DNA from: Wallemia ichthyophaga EXF-994
Taxonomy: Eukaryota; Fungi; Basidiomycota
Assembly: GCF_000400465.1 (NCBI RefSeq)
Contig: NW_008806287.1
Span: 210,001-242,000, forward strand
Direction: 5' to 3'
Length of the DNA: 32,000 nucleotides
In this document: positions 18,746-30,125 of the stretch, piece by piece
Numbering within the stretch: position 1 is the stretch's first letter
How the letters are laid out: every line of letters starts with the position of its first letter
Translations under genes and position numbers: made by a program
The notes under the pieces: model-generated
Told to the model about the DNA's origin: nothing
The model's database searches: none
What the model saw: the letters and a program-made list of their open reading frames with translations, nothing else

Positions 18746-18839
18746 GTCAGGATGGCCGAGCGGTTAAGGCGCTTGACTTGAATGTCTGAGACGTTATCAA
18801 GTACCATTTGGTGCGTAGGTTCGAATCCTGCTCCTGACG
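18746..18839 (+). tRNA. tRNA-Ser(UGA) with 13-nt canonical intron (18783-18795)
   Basis: Acceptor stem GTCAGGA/TCCTGAC with G73; A-box TGGCCGAGCGG; anticodon stem CTTGA/TCAAG with loop CT-TGA-A-[intron]-A; long variable arm; T-arm GTAGG-TTCGAAT-CCTGC; T5 terminator at 18843-18847. Confidence 0.96.
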
Positions 18840-25057: not shown

Positions 25058-25124
25058 AATGAATTGAATTGAATTTAAATTTCATTATTTTAATAATTTT
25101 AATTTGATTTGGGTGAATACCATC

Positions 25125-25950
25125 ATGATGAGGATTAGTAGAGTGGCAGGTAGAATTAGTGGATTAAACAGATTAAGTGGATTACGCTTTATAAACACCC
25201 AACCAAGCTCAGATTTCAATACACCTGCACCAATAAATCCAGCTGTGTACACCACACACCAACAAGGACCTTTACATGACTACGCCAGCTACATAATGGG
25301 ATCATTACCCAAGTTTATACAAGAATTTAGCGTTTATAAGGATGAGATTACTCTAATGGTTCCTCCTTCTGGCGTTCTCCCTACGCTGGACTACCTCAAA
25401 AACCACACCAACTCACAATTCAAATCAGCAATGGATATCACTGCAGCTGATTACCCAACCAGATCCCAAAGATTCCAAGTCATCTACAACCTCCTCAGCG
25501 TTAGACACAATGCTCGTATTAGAGTGAAGACATATGCTGATGAAGTTACGCCAGTTCCTTCAGCGACAGCAATCTACAGAGGCGCTGATTGGTTTGAAAG
25601 AGAAGCCTGGGATATGTATGGTGTCTTCTTCGTTGGCCACCCTGATCTTAGACGTATCTTGACTGATTATGGTGGGTTTGAATGGTTGTTTGGCCAAAGT
25701 TTTCACTCATCCGCAACATACAGGATTTGAAGGTCATCCACTTAGGAAAGACTTCCCCCTCACTGGCTACACAGAGTTGAGATACGATGAAGAGAAAAAG
25801 CGTGTTGTTCAAGAACCTCTACAACTCACTCAAGCCTTTAGAAACTTTGAAGGCGCTGCTTCGGTCTGGGAGCAGGTTGGTGAAGGTGTTGATGAGAAGC
25901 CAGAGCACTTTAAGCTTTCTCCACCAGAGCCAGATACTGAGAACAAGTAG
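25125..25950 (+). CDS. NDUFS3: NADH:ubiquinone oxidoreductase 30 kDa subunit, 257 aa, 1 intron (25672-25723)
   Basis: [56 protein letters not shown]|[21 protein letters not shown]; Arg-rich presequence. Confidence 0.98.
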
Positions 25951-27713: not shown

Positions 27714-28640
27714 CTAAGTCCTCCGACCAGCACCCTTCTTAGGTATCCTAGATTTGATTGGTTGCTGAGATGGGTGTTGAAACAAGCCCTTTTTAATACC
27801 CGAATTGATCTGATCTTGGAGAGACTGTGGGGACTGCGACGAGGTGGTAGTGATGGAATGTTTGTTGATGAGGTTGTTGAGGGAGTGTGTGGATGAGGTG
27901 AGGGCAGCGAGGAGGGTAGTGAGCTGGGTGTCGTTGGCTTCAGTGTCCAACTCTCTCTCAAACTGAGCACTGGTAGTCGCAGGCAGTTGAGTTGAGATGT
28001 TATAAATCATACCAAGTATTTCGTCGTCTCTGCGTGTCTGGCCATGAACTAGCTTTGTCAAATACCCTCTAATCACGTCCACTCTCTCATCCAACAGTTT
28101 TATAGCGTTAACTTGCGTGTTGAGGCCGTTTTTGAGAGCAGAGGAGTGGGAGGAGTGGTTTGATTTGTGTATATCATCAACAGTAACCCTTTCAATATCA
28201 GTTGTTTGGATTGAGTAGTCGCTTTCCACCAATTTAATGTCATCCACATCGAATACACTGACGTAGGCGTGGATGTTGGTGGACTGAGTGTCTACGACGA
28301 GTAATAACGGTGACTCAGTGTACTTAAGGAGTTGCTTGTGTATTTGAGTGGTGTTGGCGATTGTGCGTTGAGTATACCAGCCAATCAGCTCAAATTCCGG
28401 GAACACCTGCTTGAATAGCTCGAGACGGGTATTCAGGTATTCGTTATCCAATTCGACACCGCCCGCGACTCTCAACTCGAAGCTATTTACGATTTGAACA
28501 TTTCTCCCAGATTGAACGCCTAGAAGCGCACCTATAGACACCTCAGCACTGCCAATCCACTTTGACCTGGTACAGTGATCGGATATGTTGAGTACGGGGA
28601 GTGGGTGTATAGATAGCTGTACTTGGTTGGCAGACGACAT
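27714..28640 (-). CDS. CSN6: COP9 signalosome subunit 6 (MPN- domain), 308 aa
   Basis: SIHPLPVLNISDHCTR, IGALLGVQSGRNVQIVNSFEL, RLELFKQVFPEFELIGWY, ERVTVD; no JAMM metal motif. First plausible ATG is 28640. Confidence 0.85.
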   Translation of the reverse strand: MSSANQVQLSIHPLPVLNISDHCTRSKWIGSAEVSIGALLGVQSGRNVQIVNSFELRVAGGVELDNEYLNTRLELFKQVFPEFELIGWYTQRTIANTTQIHKQLLKYTESPLLLVVDTQSTNIHAYVSVFDVDDIKLVESDYSIQTTDIERVTVDDIHKSNHSSHSSALKNGLNTQVNAIKLLDERVDVIRGYLTKLVHGQTRRDDEILGMIYNISTQLPATTSAQFERELDTEANDTQLTTLLAALTSSTHSLNNLINKHSITTTSSQSPQSLQDQINSGIKKGLFQHPSQQPIKSRIPKKGAGRRT

Positions 28641-28931
28641 GGTTGTTGGGATCAAATCTATTAAAGGGCTACTACAGAACAAATACCAATCAAAAGATAT
28701 AAAATACATTGAGACAAGTATTATATTATGTCTATTGCGCGTGTTAGTGTTGCTCAGTGGAACGCAGCCAGAGCCAGACAGCACTCAGTATGTCAATTCT
28801 GGAGCCTTGTAGATGATACATGAGCACACCACTCCTCCCTGAAGAAATTCAAACTTGTGCAGTTCAAAAGCATCATGCGTGGCTGTCGTGTGGCTCTGGC
28901 TTATAAACACCACTCACAGTAGAAAATAGAA

Positions 28932-29278
28932 AACAACCGCATCCAGTACTGACCAAAAGTAAGCCCCATTCTGTTGCCATTGAAATGACCAGCAAAATAC
29001 CTTTGATAGTTGACTATCTAATGACAGACTGCAAACACACAGCTCTTGTCTTCGCTGGTGAGTGAATGCTTTCTGCCTTTCATCGGGAGTGTTTGGTGTG
29101 TCTCCCACTGCAGATCACAGGAGCCATCACCCCACTCCCCACCACACCATCGTCAAAAGACGTGCTCTCCGGCGTGCGTAGGTCCGGGGACTTTCCCCAC
29201 AGCTGTCGTCGCAGCAGAACTTGTCTACTCGCTTGTATTGCTGCGTTATGCTGCTTTTCGTCACTGGATGCGGTTGTT
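28932..29278 (-). ncRNA. NME1: RNase MRP RNA (about 347 nt)
   Basis: Perfect 16-bp terminal helix P1 (29263-29278 with 28932-28947), extended by GACGAAAAG/CTTTTGGTC. P2 CAGCA/TGCTG; P3 CGCAGCA/TGCTGCG; CR-I GGGGAAAGTCCCCGGACCT (29198-29180); GARAR-like GGAGAG (29170-29165); CR-IV-like ATAGTCA (29017-29011); P19 hairpin (28989-28976); CR-V ACAGAATGGGGCTTACT (28974-28958), completing P4 AAGTCCCC/GGGGCTT. Confidence 0.92.
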
Positions 29279-29304: not shown

Positions 29305-29311
29305 TTAAATA
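29305..29311 (-). promoter_or_regulatory. TATA-like box upstream of the RNase MRP RNA
   Basis: TATTTAA lies 27-33 nt upstream of the inferred 5' end of P1. Confidence 0.5.
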
Positions 29312-29446
29312 GTCTGGAAAATTTGTAAAATTGCTTCAACTATCCTGATATACATGTATCTTACATTCTACTATACAATACACCTTTCTACACGCTTGGG
29401 AATGAGATTAGTGAGGGTCGTTATGGTCTGAAAATTTTCATCTTTT

Positions 29447-30125
29447 TCAGCGCACCTCACCGTCATTAGCATCACCAGCAGAAGCCTTGGCGCCCCCGCA
29501 GGCAACGACACCTCTCTCCTTGTTCCTCTCCCGAATCAGCCCCGCTAGCACCGCGCGCAGTCCCTCTACGACGCTGGTGGTGGGTGGGGGATGGATACGC
29601 AACACCTCGTGCGTGCTCACCAACCCCGCTTCGTCGAATGCATATCGAAACAGCACATCCCACTCGTATCGTTGCTGAGTGAGTCTGTTCGTGCCGTTCA
29701 CTATGAGCCCCATGTGGACATGGCGGTGGTCGTGCAAGCTCACACCCTTCACCACCACCGATGTGTCCGCGTGCAGCGCTACAAACACCACGCGCAGCAC
29801 ACCCGCACTGCGCATATACACCCCTCTGCCGCGCAGAGAAGGCAGTGAAAATTGGCGCAATCGGAGCTGTACGTGCGGGGAGTATAGGGGTGCGCCATTT
29901 GGTAAGATATCCACTAAACCCTCATGGAAGAACTGAGGGAGCGTCTCGTTGAGTGTGTTTATCGCCCTTCCTGCGTGGTTTAGCGGTGTAGGCAGTGGAA
30001 TACGCATACACACCGATTCGTAGGGATTGCTGGGAATCTGAGTGGATATTCCTAGTGTTCCTGATAGCTGGAATACGTCTAATCCTCGTAACACCTCTAA
30101 TGCCTGTACTATACCCAATACACAT
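29447..30125 (-). CDS. DUF2358/C6orf136-like (NTF2/SnoaL-fold) probable mitochondrial protein, 211 aa, 1 intron (29971-30013)
   Basis: Arg-rich presequence-like exon 1 ([28 protein letters not shown]) splices via a 43-nt GTGTGT...CTAAAC...CAG intron to LRIG|[16 protein letters not shown]...LYSPHVQL...RGRGVY. An alternative unspliced start at ATG 30007 gives 186 aa. Family call from remembered motif only. Confidence 0.65.

Follow-up and report, generated by a model that had tools for sequence, protein, structure and literature searches.

What occupies the 806-nucleotide (nt) gap between a hypothetical open reading frame (ORF) and the start of the CSN6 gene in Wallemia ichthyophaga EXF-994, and is it a gene at all? 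The gap lies in a 32,000-nt stretch of contig NW_008806287.1 (positions 210,001 to 242,000), here called the window, and all coordinates are counted from its first base. The ORF ends at 29447 on the minus strand and CSN6 starts at 28640, and these are the nearest coding calls. From the sequence, an initial annotation had placed a complete gene for the RNA of RNase MRP in this intergenic space. RNase MRP is a universal eukaryotic enzyme that cuts pre-ribosomal RNA (pre-rRNA). Our analysis agrees, and the 347-base stretch at 28932-29278 (minus strand) very probably encodes, as a single-locus gene, the RNA subunit of the W. ichthyophaga nuclear RNase MRP, with a predicted RNA of ∼343 to 347 nt. 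The assignment is drawn from a match to Rfam family RF00030, extended by a terminal helix, and from syntenic orthologues with compensatory changes. The gene is ordinary and essential, a housekeeping member of a known family that stands out by its longer P1 helix and expanded domain 2. All RNA features described below are on the minus strand, and RNA position n is found at window coordinate 29279-n.

Assignment to the RNase MRP RNA family

The whole window was scanned against all 4227 Rfam families, using gathering thresholds and within-clan competition, and yielded two matches only, one to tRNA and one to RNase_MRP (RF00030). The latter lies at 29268-28943 and reaches 61.3 bits, with the threshold at 50 (expectation value [E] of 5.7e-15), spanning model positions 1 to 266, which is the full model. 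No other family of the RNase P/MRP clan (CL00002) was reported at the locus, where RNaseP_nuc would need just 28 bits, and neither RNaseP_nuc nor RNaseP_arch gave a match there, nor in the scan of the W. hederae orthologue at E values up to 1. The comparison of RNase_MRP and nuclear RNase P covariance models that the initial annotation had proposed thus returns RNase_MRP above its threshold and no RNase P family. No ORF of at least 100 amino acids (aa) overlaps the locus, and the protein-gene calls of four public assemblies leave the gap that contains it empty in each. We found no paper in the literature that pairs Wallemia with RNase MRP.

The gene is present in four W. ichthyophaga assemblies (60.3 to 61.3 bits), which differ at three positions, all of them compatible with the structure. 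One is a G:C to G:U change in the short domain 2 hairpin of the Rfam alignment, and the other two fall outside the helices tested, with the internal loop of P3 and the variable hairpin B holding one each. Orthologues are found between Uba2 and CSN6 in both W. hederae (L005) and the Wallemia-like Logan assembly L006, in which CSN6 is 66 to 67% identical. The L006 RNA scores 66.3 bits, and that of W. hederae (L005 5295-5649, plus strand) scores 49.2 bits (E of 2e-12), which is 0.8 bit below the gathering score of 50. A metagenome scan with the Wallemia-conserved 23-mer GCTGTGGGGAAAGTCCCCGGACC gave no match, and a homology search with the neighboring Uba2 exon returned distant short fragments only, none from Wallemia.

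An extended terminal helix

Read on the minus strand, the region opens with AACAACCGCAUCCAGU (29278-29263) and closes with ACUGGAUGCGGUUGUU (28947-28932), and the perfect 16-bp terminal helix claimed from the sequence is present, pairing AACAACCGCATCCAGT with ACTGGATGCGGTTGTT over these same coordinates. No other perfect inverted repeat of at least 14 nt within 600 nt occurs in the 32-kb window, where ∼0.004 such repeats would be expected by chance at uniform composition. Inside the 16 bp are GAC:GUC (3 bp), a bulge of three nucleotides (AGU) in the 3′ strand (RNA 329-331), one G-G mismatch, and AAAAG:CUUUU (5 bp), for a P1 total of 24 bp; the helix had been put at about 25 bp with a 3-nt bulge. 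The P1 5′ strand occupies 29254-29278 (RNA 1-25) and pairs as 16 + 3 + 5 bp with the 3′ strand at 28932-28959 (RNA 320-347). The outer 14 bp are kept in all three species, and two A-U pairs are added in W. ichthyophaga. Compensatory changes are seen across species at three pairs (A-U/G-U/G-C in the outer part, G-C/C-G, and G-C/A-U), and the GAC:GUC segment becomes CAC:GUG.

P1 runs 10 to 11 nt past each end of the Rfam match, and its outer part is therefore an extension relative to the family model. The Rfam consensus P1 has 10 bp, in contrast to ∼24 bp in Wallemia with an uninterrupted outer run of 14 to 16 bp, and in the other MRP matches whose ends were inspected the uninterrupted P1 is ∼9 to 12 bp and ends at the Rfam boundary. 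A ranking of P1 lengths by RNAduplex on flanking DNA was dropped because it over-extends into non-RNA flanks and conserved region V (CR-V), and the comparison is thus kept qualitative. The long Wallemia P1 is real and unusual in degree, and is a quantitative variation of a known element.

Domain 1 and the catalytic core

The P2, P3, and P19 stems named in the initial annotation all exist, as do CR-I, CR-IV, and CR-V in canonical order, at 29195-29186, 29002-28997, and 28975-28960, respectively. P2 pairs CAGCA (29249-29253; RNA 26-30) with UGCUG (28990-28994; RNA 285-289), with 100% of cells paired. Its register, C26-A30:U285-G289, is shifted by ∼2 nt from the Rfam register (A24-C29), which was rejected because the W. 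hederae helix, UGGCA:UGCCA, differs from the W. ichthyophaga CAGCA:UGCUG by two double compensatory pairs. P3 (29198-29245; RNA 34-81) is a helix-internal loop-helix with an invariant outer stem, CGCAGC:GCUGUG, and a 6-bp inner stem with one-sided changes. The P19 hairpin (28976-28989; RNA 290-303) has 5 bp and a UUCA loop, with 100% of cells paired and one-sided changes at two pairs.

CR-I (GAAAGUCCCC) is the same as the Rfam consensus and is invariant in the three species, and the CR-I stretch GGGGAAAGUCCCCGGAC is identical to the consensus at 17/17 positions. The initial annotation had likened 19 nt of CR-I to vertebrate RMRP; the sequence compared with CR-I here was the Rfam consensus. CR-V (AACAGAAUGGGGCUUA) contains the 3′ strand of the P4 pseudoknot. 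As initially described, P4 has a bulged U (U89), with the 5′ strand AAGUCCCC (29193-29186; RNA 86-93) pairing to GGGGCUU (28967-28961; RNA 312-318) through RNA 86-88:316-318 and 90-93:312-315; every cell pairs in the three species, at invariant positions. One nucleotide (G94) past the CR-I decamer is the P5 5′ strand GAC (29182-29184; RNA 95-97), with the 3′ strand GUC at 29012-29014 (RNA 265-267). These 3 bp are invariant on both sides in the three species, and the P5 pairing is predicted from position and family homology, without covariation. The minimum-free-energy hairpin GAUAG-UCAA-CUAUC takes in the GUC of the conserved P5 3′ strand and was rejected for that reason. The six nucleotides of CR-IV, AGGUAU (RNA 277-282), align to Rfam AGUUAu, are invariant in the three species, and fit the MRP pattern A1-G2-N-N-A7-N (PMC13184271).

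Domain 2 and the GARAR element

Domain 2 (29023-29180; RNA 99-256) comprises a closing helix A (99-109:130-139), the GARAR element, a small hairpin (117-128), the long hairpin B (140-194), and a P12-like helix (202-256). When the three species are folded independently the layout recurs, although their sequences diverge, and the Rfam posterior probabilities are low across the domain. The GARAR motif, as defined previously (PMC3737539 and PMC13184271), is represented by GAGAG at 29165-29169 (RNA 110-114), closed by G109:C115; it is GAGAG in W. ichthyophaga and W. hederae and GAAAG in L006, and the closing G:C is conserved. The small hairpin after it is wholly different in sequence in each species (CGUC/GACG, UCACC/GGUGA, and UCAUCU/AGAUGA), and hairpin B varies from 55 to 75 nt. 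The tip of the P12-like helix, CAGC[GAAGACAAGA]GCUG (29040-29057; RNA 222-239), aligns to Rfam GCcAAGA...GAGC and is kept in the three lineages as CAGC[GAAGAYAWGA]GCUG, without the consensus terminal hairpin.

Conservation of base pairing

Pairs were counted in alignment A2 over a structure comprising P1, P2, both P3 stems, the P4 pseudoknot, the P12-like base and tip, and P19. This named structure replaced RNAalifold on a MAFFT alignment, which cannot draw the pseudoknot and which paired GGGGA locally with UCCCC and chose a wrong partner for P2. Standard pairs form in 98.1% of 310 cells, compared with 33 to 54% when the 3′ partners are slid by 1 to 3 columns, and 95 to 100% of cells pair in each of P1, P2, P3, and P19. 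Both sides change at six pairs (three in P1, two in P2, and one in the P12 base), a number reached in 1 of 500 shuffles. This covariation is supportive, in that three lineages give the pattern expected of a constrained RNA, short of a statistically strong signal.

RNase P, a pseudogene, or chance?

Nuclear RNase P RNA (RF00009) shares common ancestry with MRP RNA, as well as the P1-P4 core, the CR-I/CR-IV/CR-V framework, and protein subunits. A locus with these features could in principle encode the RNase P RNA that acts in tRNA 5′ end processing, and the P4 strings are indeed no safe guide. We picked metagenome loci by the CR-V 18-mer and filtered them for CR-I, and 7 of 20 such loci are archaeal RNase P RNA genes (RF00373; L045, L113, L058, L091, L069, L049, and L110), which carry exactly CR-I GAAAGTCCCC and CR-V AACNGAATGGGGCTTAYT and thus have P4 strand sequences (GAAAGUCCCC and AACNGAAUGGGGCUUAYU) identical to those in Wallemia. 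Choosing MRP loci by the CR-I and CR-V strings alone was therefore rejected, and P4 strings alone cannot separate MRP from every RNase P. The initial annotation had held that GAAAGUCCCC/GGGGCU together with GARAR marks MRP over RNase P; for the P4 strings this is too strong, as the seven archaeal loci share them, and GARAR is one of several features that discriminate here.

The features that do discriminate are described with the 2026 human MRP structure (PMC13184271): in MRP, a 3-bp P5 abuts CR-I, CR-IV has 6 nt, and P8 carries a GARAR pentaloop, and RNase P has an 8-nt CR-IV, P7 replacing P5, an S-domain with CR-II/CR-III, and no GARAR. At the Wallemia locus, CR-IV has 6 nt rather than 8, a 3-bp P5 abuts CR-I where RNase P has a distant P7, and GARAR is present. 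There is no P10/11-P12 S-domain with CR-II/CR-III, as judged indirectly: no conserved loops resembling CR-II/CR-III appear in the domain 2 folds (three hairpins), and no RNaseP_nuc match of at least 28 bits overlaps. The seven archaeal loci score 175 to 195 bits on RNaseP_arch, whereas the Wallemia locus has no such match and lies between eukaryotic genes on a fungal chromosome. The distinction from RNase P is thus made by the covariance model together with the eukaryotic context, P5, a CR-IV of 6 nt, and GARAR, and an RNase P RNA at this locus is extremely improbable.

We also consider it very unlikely that the locus is a nonfunctional or redundant MRP RNA copy, with the working gene elsewhere. 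Such a reading could draw on the modest Rfam score and on the DNA examined, which comprised the window and the syntenic loci. Against it, the catalytic-core motifs are all kept intact and without change in three lineages with CSN6 proteins just 66 to 67% identical, the helix substitutions are compensatory, the promoter-like elements are conserved, and the position is syntenic. Nor is there much to recommend a chance inverted repeat with motifs, or a structure in regulatory DNA or an untranslated region (UTR), such as the CSN6 promoter or 5′ UTR, that forms no stable noncoding RNA. The element does lie upstream of CSN6 on the same strand. However, the covariance-model E value (5.7e-15) holds for the full model, the core that forms the pseudoknot does not differ from the family consensus, perfect 16-bp inverted repeats are rare by chance, and several helices covary, which leaves this explanation with next to no probability.

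Several observations nonetheless count against an MRP RNA gene, or lower the weight of the evidence for one. The score of 61.3 bits is just 11 bits over the threshold, with the W. hederae orthologue slightly under it, and nine other MRP matches examined at the gathering threshold score 70 to 122 bits. P4, P5, the P3 outer stem, and CR-IV are invariant among the three species and thus rest on conservation and family homology rather than covariation, and the covariation sample consists of three divergent lineages only. A multi-bp P8 stem around the GARAR pentaloop is not evident, and there is a single G:C inside the larger, covarying helix A; we note that the P8 stem is not seen in the yeast holoenzyme either (PMC3737539). 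The scans that could reveal a second copy, or an RNase P RNA gene, covered the 32-kb window and the syntenic loci.

Expression signals and proposed function

A TATA-like box (TATTTAA, 29305-29311), unchanged among the three species, starts 33 nt ahead of P1. Its end is 28 to 29 nt from the start of the conserved helix in all three, with divergent spacer sequence, and this fixed spacing puts the likely transcription start ∼30 nt downstream of the box, on the first P1 base or immediately before it. Another invariant element, ACAAATTTT (29318-29326), lies 6 to 7 nt upstream of the TATA-like box and may be a functional upstream element. After P1, the three species have T-runs of T4, T6 (8 nt away), and T3; with no conservation among them, a reading as RNA polymerase III terminators was rejected. 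The yeast NME1 gene is occupied by RNA polymerase II (bioRxiv 10.1101/352906). We slightly favor polymerase II for the Wallemia gene also, with low confidence, because of the nonconserved downstream T-runs and a candidate small nucleolar RNA (snoRNA) gene within ∼50 nt.

We also note a short block, (G/A)AAAATTTT(C/G), at 29430-29439 (minus strand), ∼150 to 160 nt upstream of the MRP RNA, which is kept in L005 and L006. It overlaps the stop codon (29447-29449) with which the hypothetical ORF upstream ends, reaching just beyond.

The ∼345-nt transcript would fold into a domain 1 with P1, P2, P3, the CR-I/CR-V P4 pseudoknot, P5, CR-IV, and P19, and into a lineage-specific, expanded domain 2 with GARAR. 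The uninterrupted outer P1 of 14 to 16 bp would clamp both RNA ends together and could protect them from exonucleases. If it behaves as its yeast and human homologues do, the RNA would assemble with the shared Pop/Rpp proteins and with MRP-specific proteins, P3 serving as the Pop6/Pop7-binding arm as in characterized enzymes and P4, P5, and CR-IV forming the cradle for a Pop1/Pop4/Rmp1 module. GARAR would dock on P4 and contact the substrate, and the assembled complex would cleave single-stranded pre-rRNA in internal transcribed spacer 1 (ITS1). The family assignment, helices, covariation, and synteny are observed here, and the protein partners, catalysis, and substrate in Wallemia are those presumed from the family.

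A candidate box C/D snoRNA gene downstream

The three Wallemia-lineage loci share a conserved block, which in the window is at 28785-28879 (minus strand), 52 nt beyond the 3′ end of the MRP RNA, and has counterparts at about L005 5738-5835 and L006 5779-5870 (both plus strand). By its anatomy it is a candidate box C/D snoRNA. Its C box, AUGAUGC (a 6/7 match to RUGAUGA), is followed by GUUUGAAUUUCUUCA and then by CAAGGCUCCAGAAUUGACAUA, directly before the D box CUGA; within the block are the putative guide UUGAAUUUCUUCA and a second conserved block, GGCUCCAGAAUUGACAUA. Assignment to an Rfam family failed, with no significant match (the best was DdR13, at 11.5 bits and E of 6.7). In the weak DdR13 alignment, one end of the candidate holds the C box and the other the D box.

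The 13-nt guide UUGAAUUUCUUCA is invariant in 13 loci. In the Wallemia loci it lies 113 to 143 nt from the start of the MRP CR-V motif, and it recurs in seven non-Wallemia metagenome loci, each time 149 to 312 nt downstream of the CR-V motif start on the same strand (L007 806-818 and L010 1179-1191, plus strand; L083 41-53, L041 237-249, and L051 12485-12497, minus strand; L073 8670-8682, plus strand; and L100 2019-2031, minus strand), where ∼0.02 chance matches would be expected in the DNA searched. Five of the seven were scanned with Rfam, and all five have an RNase_MRP match upstream: L007 (81.5 bits), L010 (69.8 bits), L083 (52.7 bits), and, below the 50-bit threshold, L041 (38.8 bits; E of 7.3e-08) and L100 (30.1 bits; E of 4e-05). 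L051 and L073 have the same snoRNA region as L041, and L100 has a perfect D′ box, CUGA, one nucleotide after the guide. The seven loci represent at least four distinct, probably fungal, lineages, and with this recurrence the pairing of an MRP RNA gene with this candidate C/D snoRNA gene is conserved beyond Wallemia.

The guide UUGAAUUUCUUCA is, we presume, complementary to UGAAGAAAUUCAA of yeast 25S rRNA, and the box-plus-5 rule would then pick the A at the snR47/U36 site. The site listed for snR47/U36/AtU36a is Am2218/2220 (PMC3511168). In S. cerevisiae, the C/D snoRNA gene SNR66 lies directly after NME1 on the same strand (PMC9731477). The Wallemia arrangement is alike, with an MRP RNA gene followed by a same-strand box C/D snoRNA gene. 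We take snR66 to guide large-subunit (LSU) rRNA U2417, unlike the Wallemia guide with its presumed snR47/U36 target (LSU A2218/A2220), and the NME1-SNR66 spacing to be ∼160 nt in yeast, compared with ∼52 nt in Wallemia. In the literature that could be searched, we found no paper describing MRP-snoRNA linkage.

What potential for novelty the locus has lies in the MRP-snoRNA gene pair alone. Tentatively, and with the odds against it, the two could form a conserved two-gene unit, possibly with one polymerase II precursor processed into both RNAs, and the ends of the MRP RNA would then be set by the long P1 clamp during this processing. If co-transcription is true, the pairing bears on MRP RNA transcription and 3′ processing in fungi.

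Clustering of an MRP RNA with a snoRNA is seen again in two other metagenome loci, L075 (615-705) and L038 (252-342), each with a snoZ159/U59 box C/D snoRNA (59 to 80 bits, plus strand) that precedes a same-strand RNase MRP RNA by ∼340 to 370 nt; these are probably from a plant or an alga.

Relationship to other RNase MRP RNAs

The Wallemia RNA resembles the RNAs of RF00030 (human RMRP and S. cerevisiae NME1) in having P1, P2, P3 with its internal loop, the P4 pseudoknot, P5, a 6-nt CR-IV, and P19, together with the GARAR motif and the P12 tip motif GCGAAGA...GAGC. It departs from them in that GARAR is closed by a single G:C in a larger helix, with no short P8 hairpin cap; domain 2 has an extra hairpin of 55 to 75 nt; the P12 terminal hairpin is deleted; and two nucleotides are added between CR-IV and P2. 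The three-species alignment provides a deep-branching basidiomycete data point, in which domain 2 and P1 vary and P4, P5, CR-IV, and GARAR are fixed. The gene completes the noncoding RNA gene inventory of a salt-loving, extremophile basidiomycete with a very compact genome. The Wallemia MRP RNAs score near the Rfam threshold (61, 66, and 49 bits), and threshold-based pipelines would miss that of W. hederae, at 49.2 bits against a gathering score of 50.

Two further arrangements were observed among the metagenome loci. The RNase MRP matches in L010 (27-970, plus strand) and L083 (275-1303, minus strand) span 944 and 1029 nt, respectively, which suggests very large MRP RNA insertions in some fungi. 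On four metagenome contigs, the 3′ end of LSU rRNA, nuclear RNase P RNA, RNase MRP RNA, and 5S rRNA are found in that order on one strand within ∼1.5 to 2.7 kb: L123 (1-1510), L024 (1285-3979), L055 (1-2211), and L025 (1303-3298), with the LSU end not captured in L025 and no 5S in L123. Both ribozyme genes thus lie in a ribosomal DNA spacer of some eukaryote.

Other features of the window

The protein-coding genes around the MRP RNA gene were identified with Pfam. CSN6 (COP9 signalosome subunit 6, 308 aa) is at 27714-28640 on the minus strand, the complex I 30-kDa subunit gene at 25104-25730 on the plus strand, and a ThiF/Uba2 gene begins at about 30042 on the plus strand; the hypothetical ORF upstream of the MRP RNA has no Pfam family. 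The CSN6 protein occurs without a single residue changed on W. ichthyophaga contigs, among them KE007237.1 of GCA_000400465.1, which is the accession of strain EXF-994 in PMC4987115, and its nearest protein cluster likewise bears the name W. ichthyophaga. The single tRNA gene of the window (18746-18839, plus strand; 51.4 bits) was given no anticodon name by ARAGORN. It has a long variable arm and a 15-nt insertion after the anticodon, which is consistent with an intron, and it is probably a tRNA-Ser(UGA) gene.

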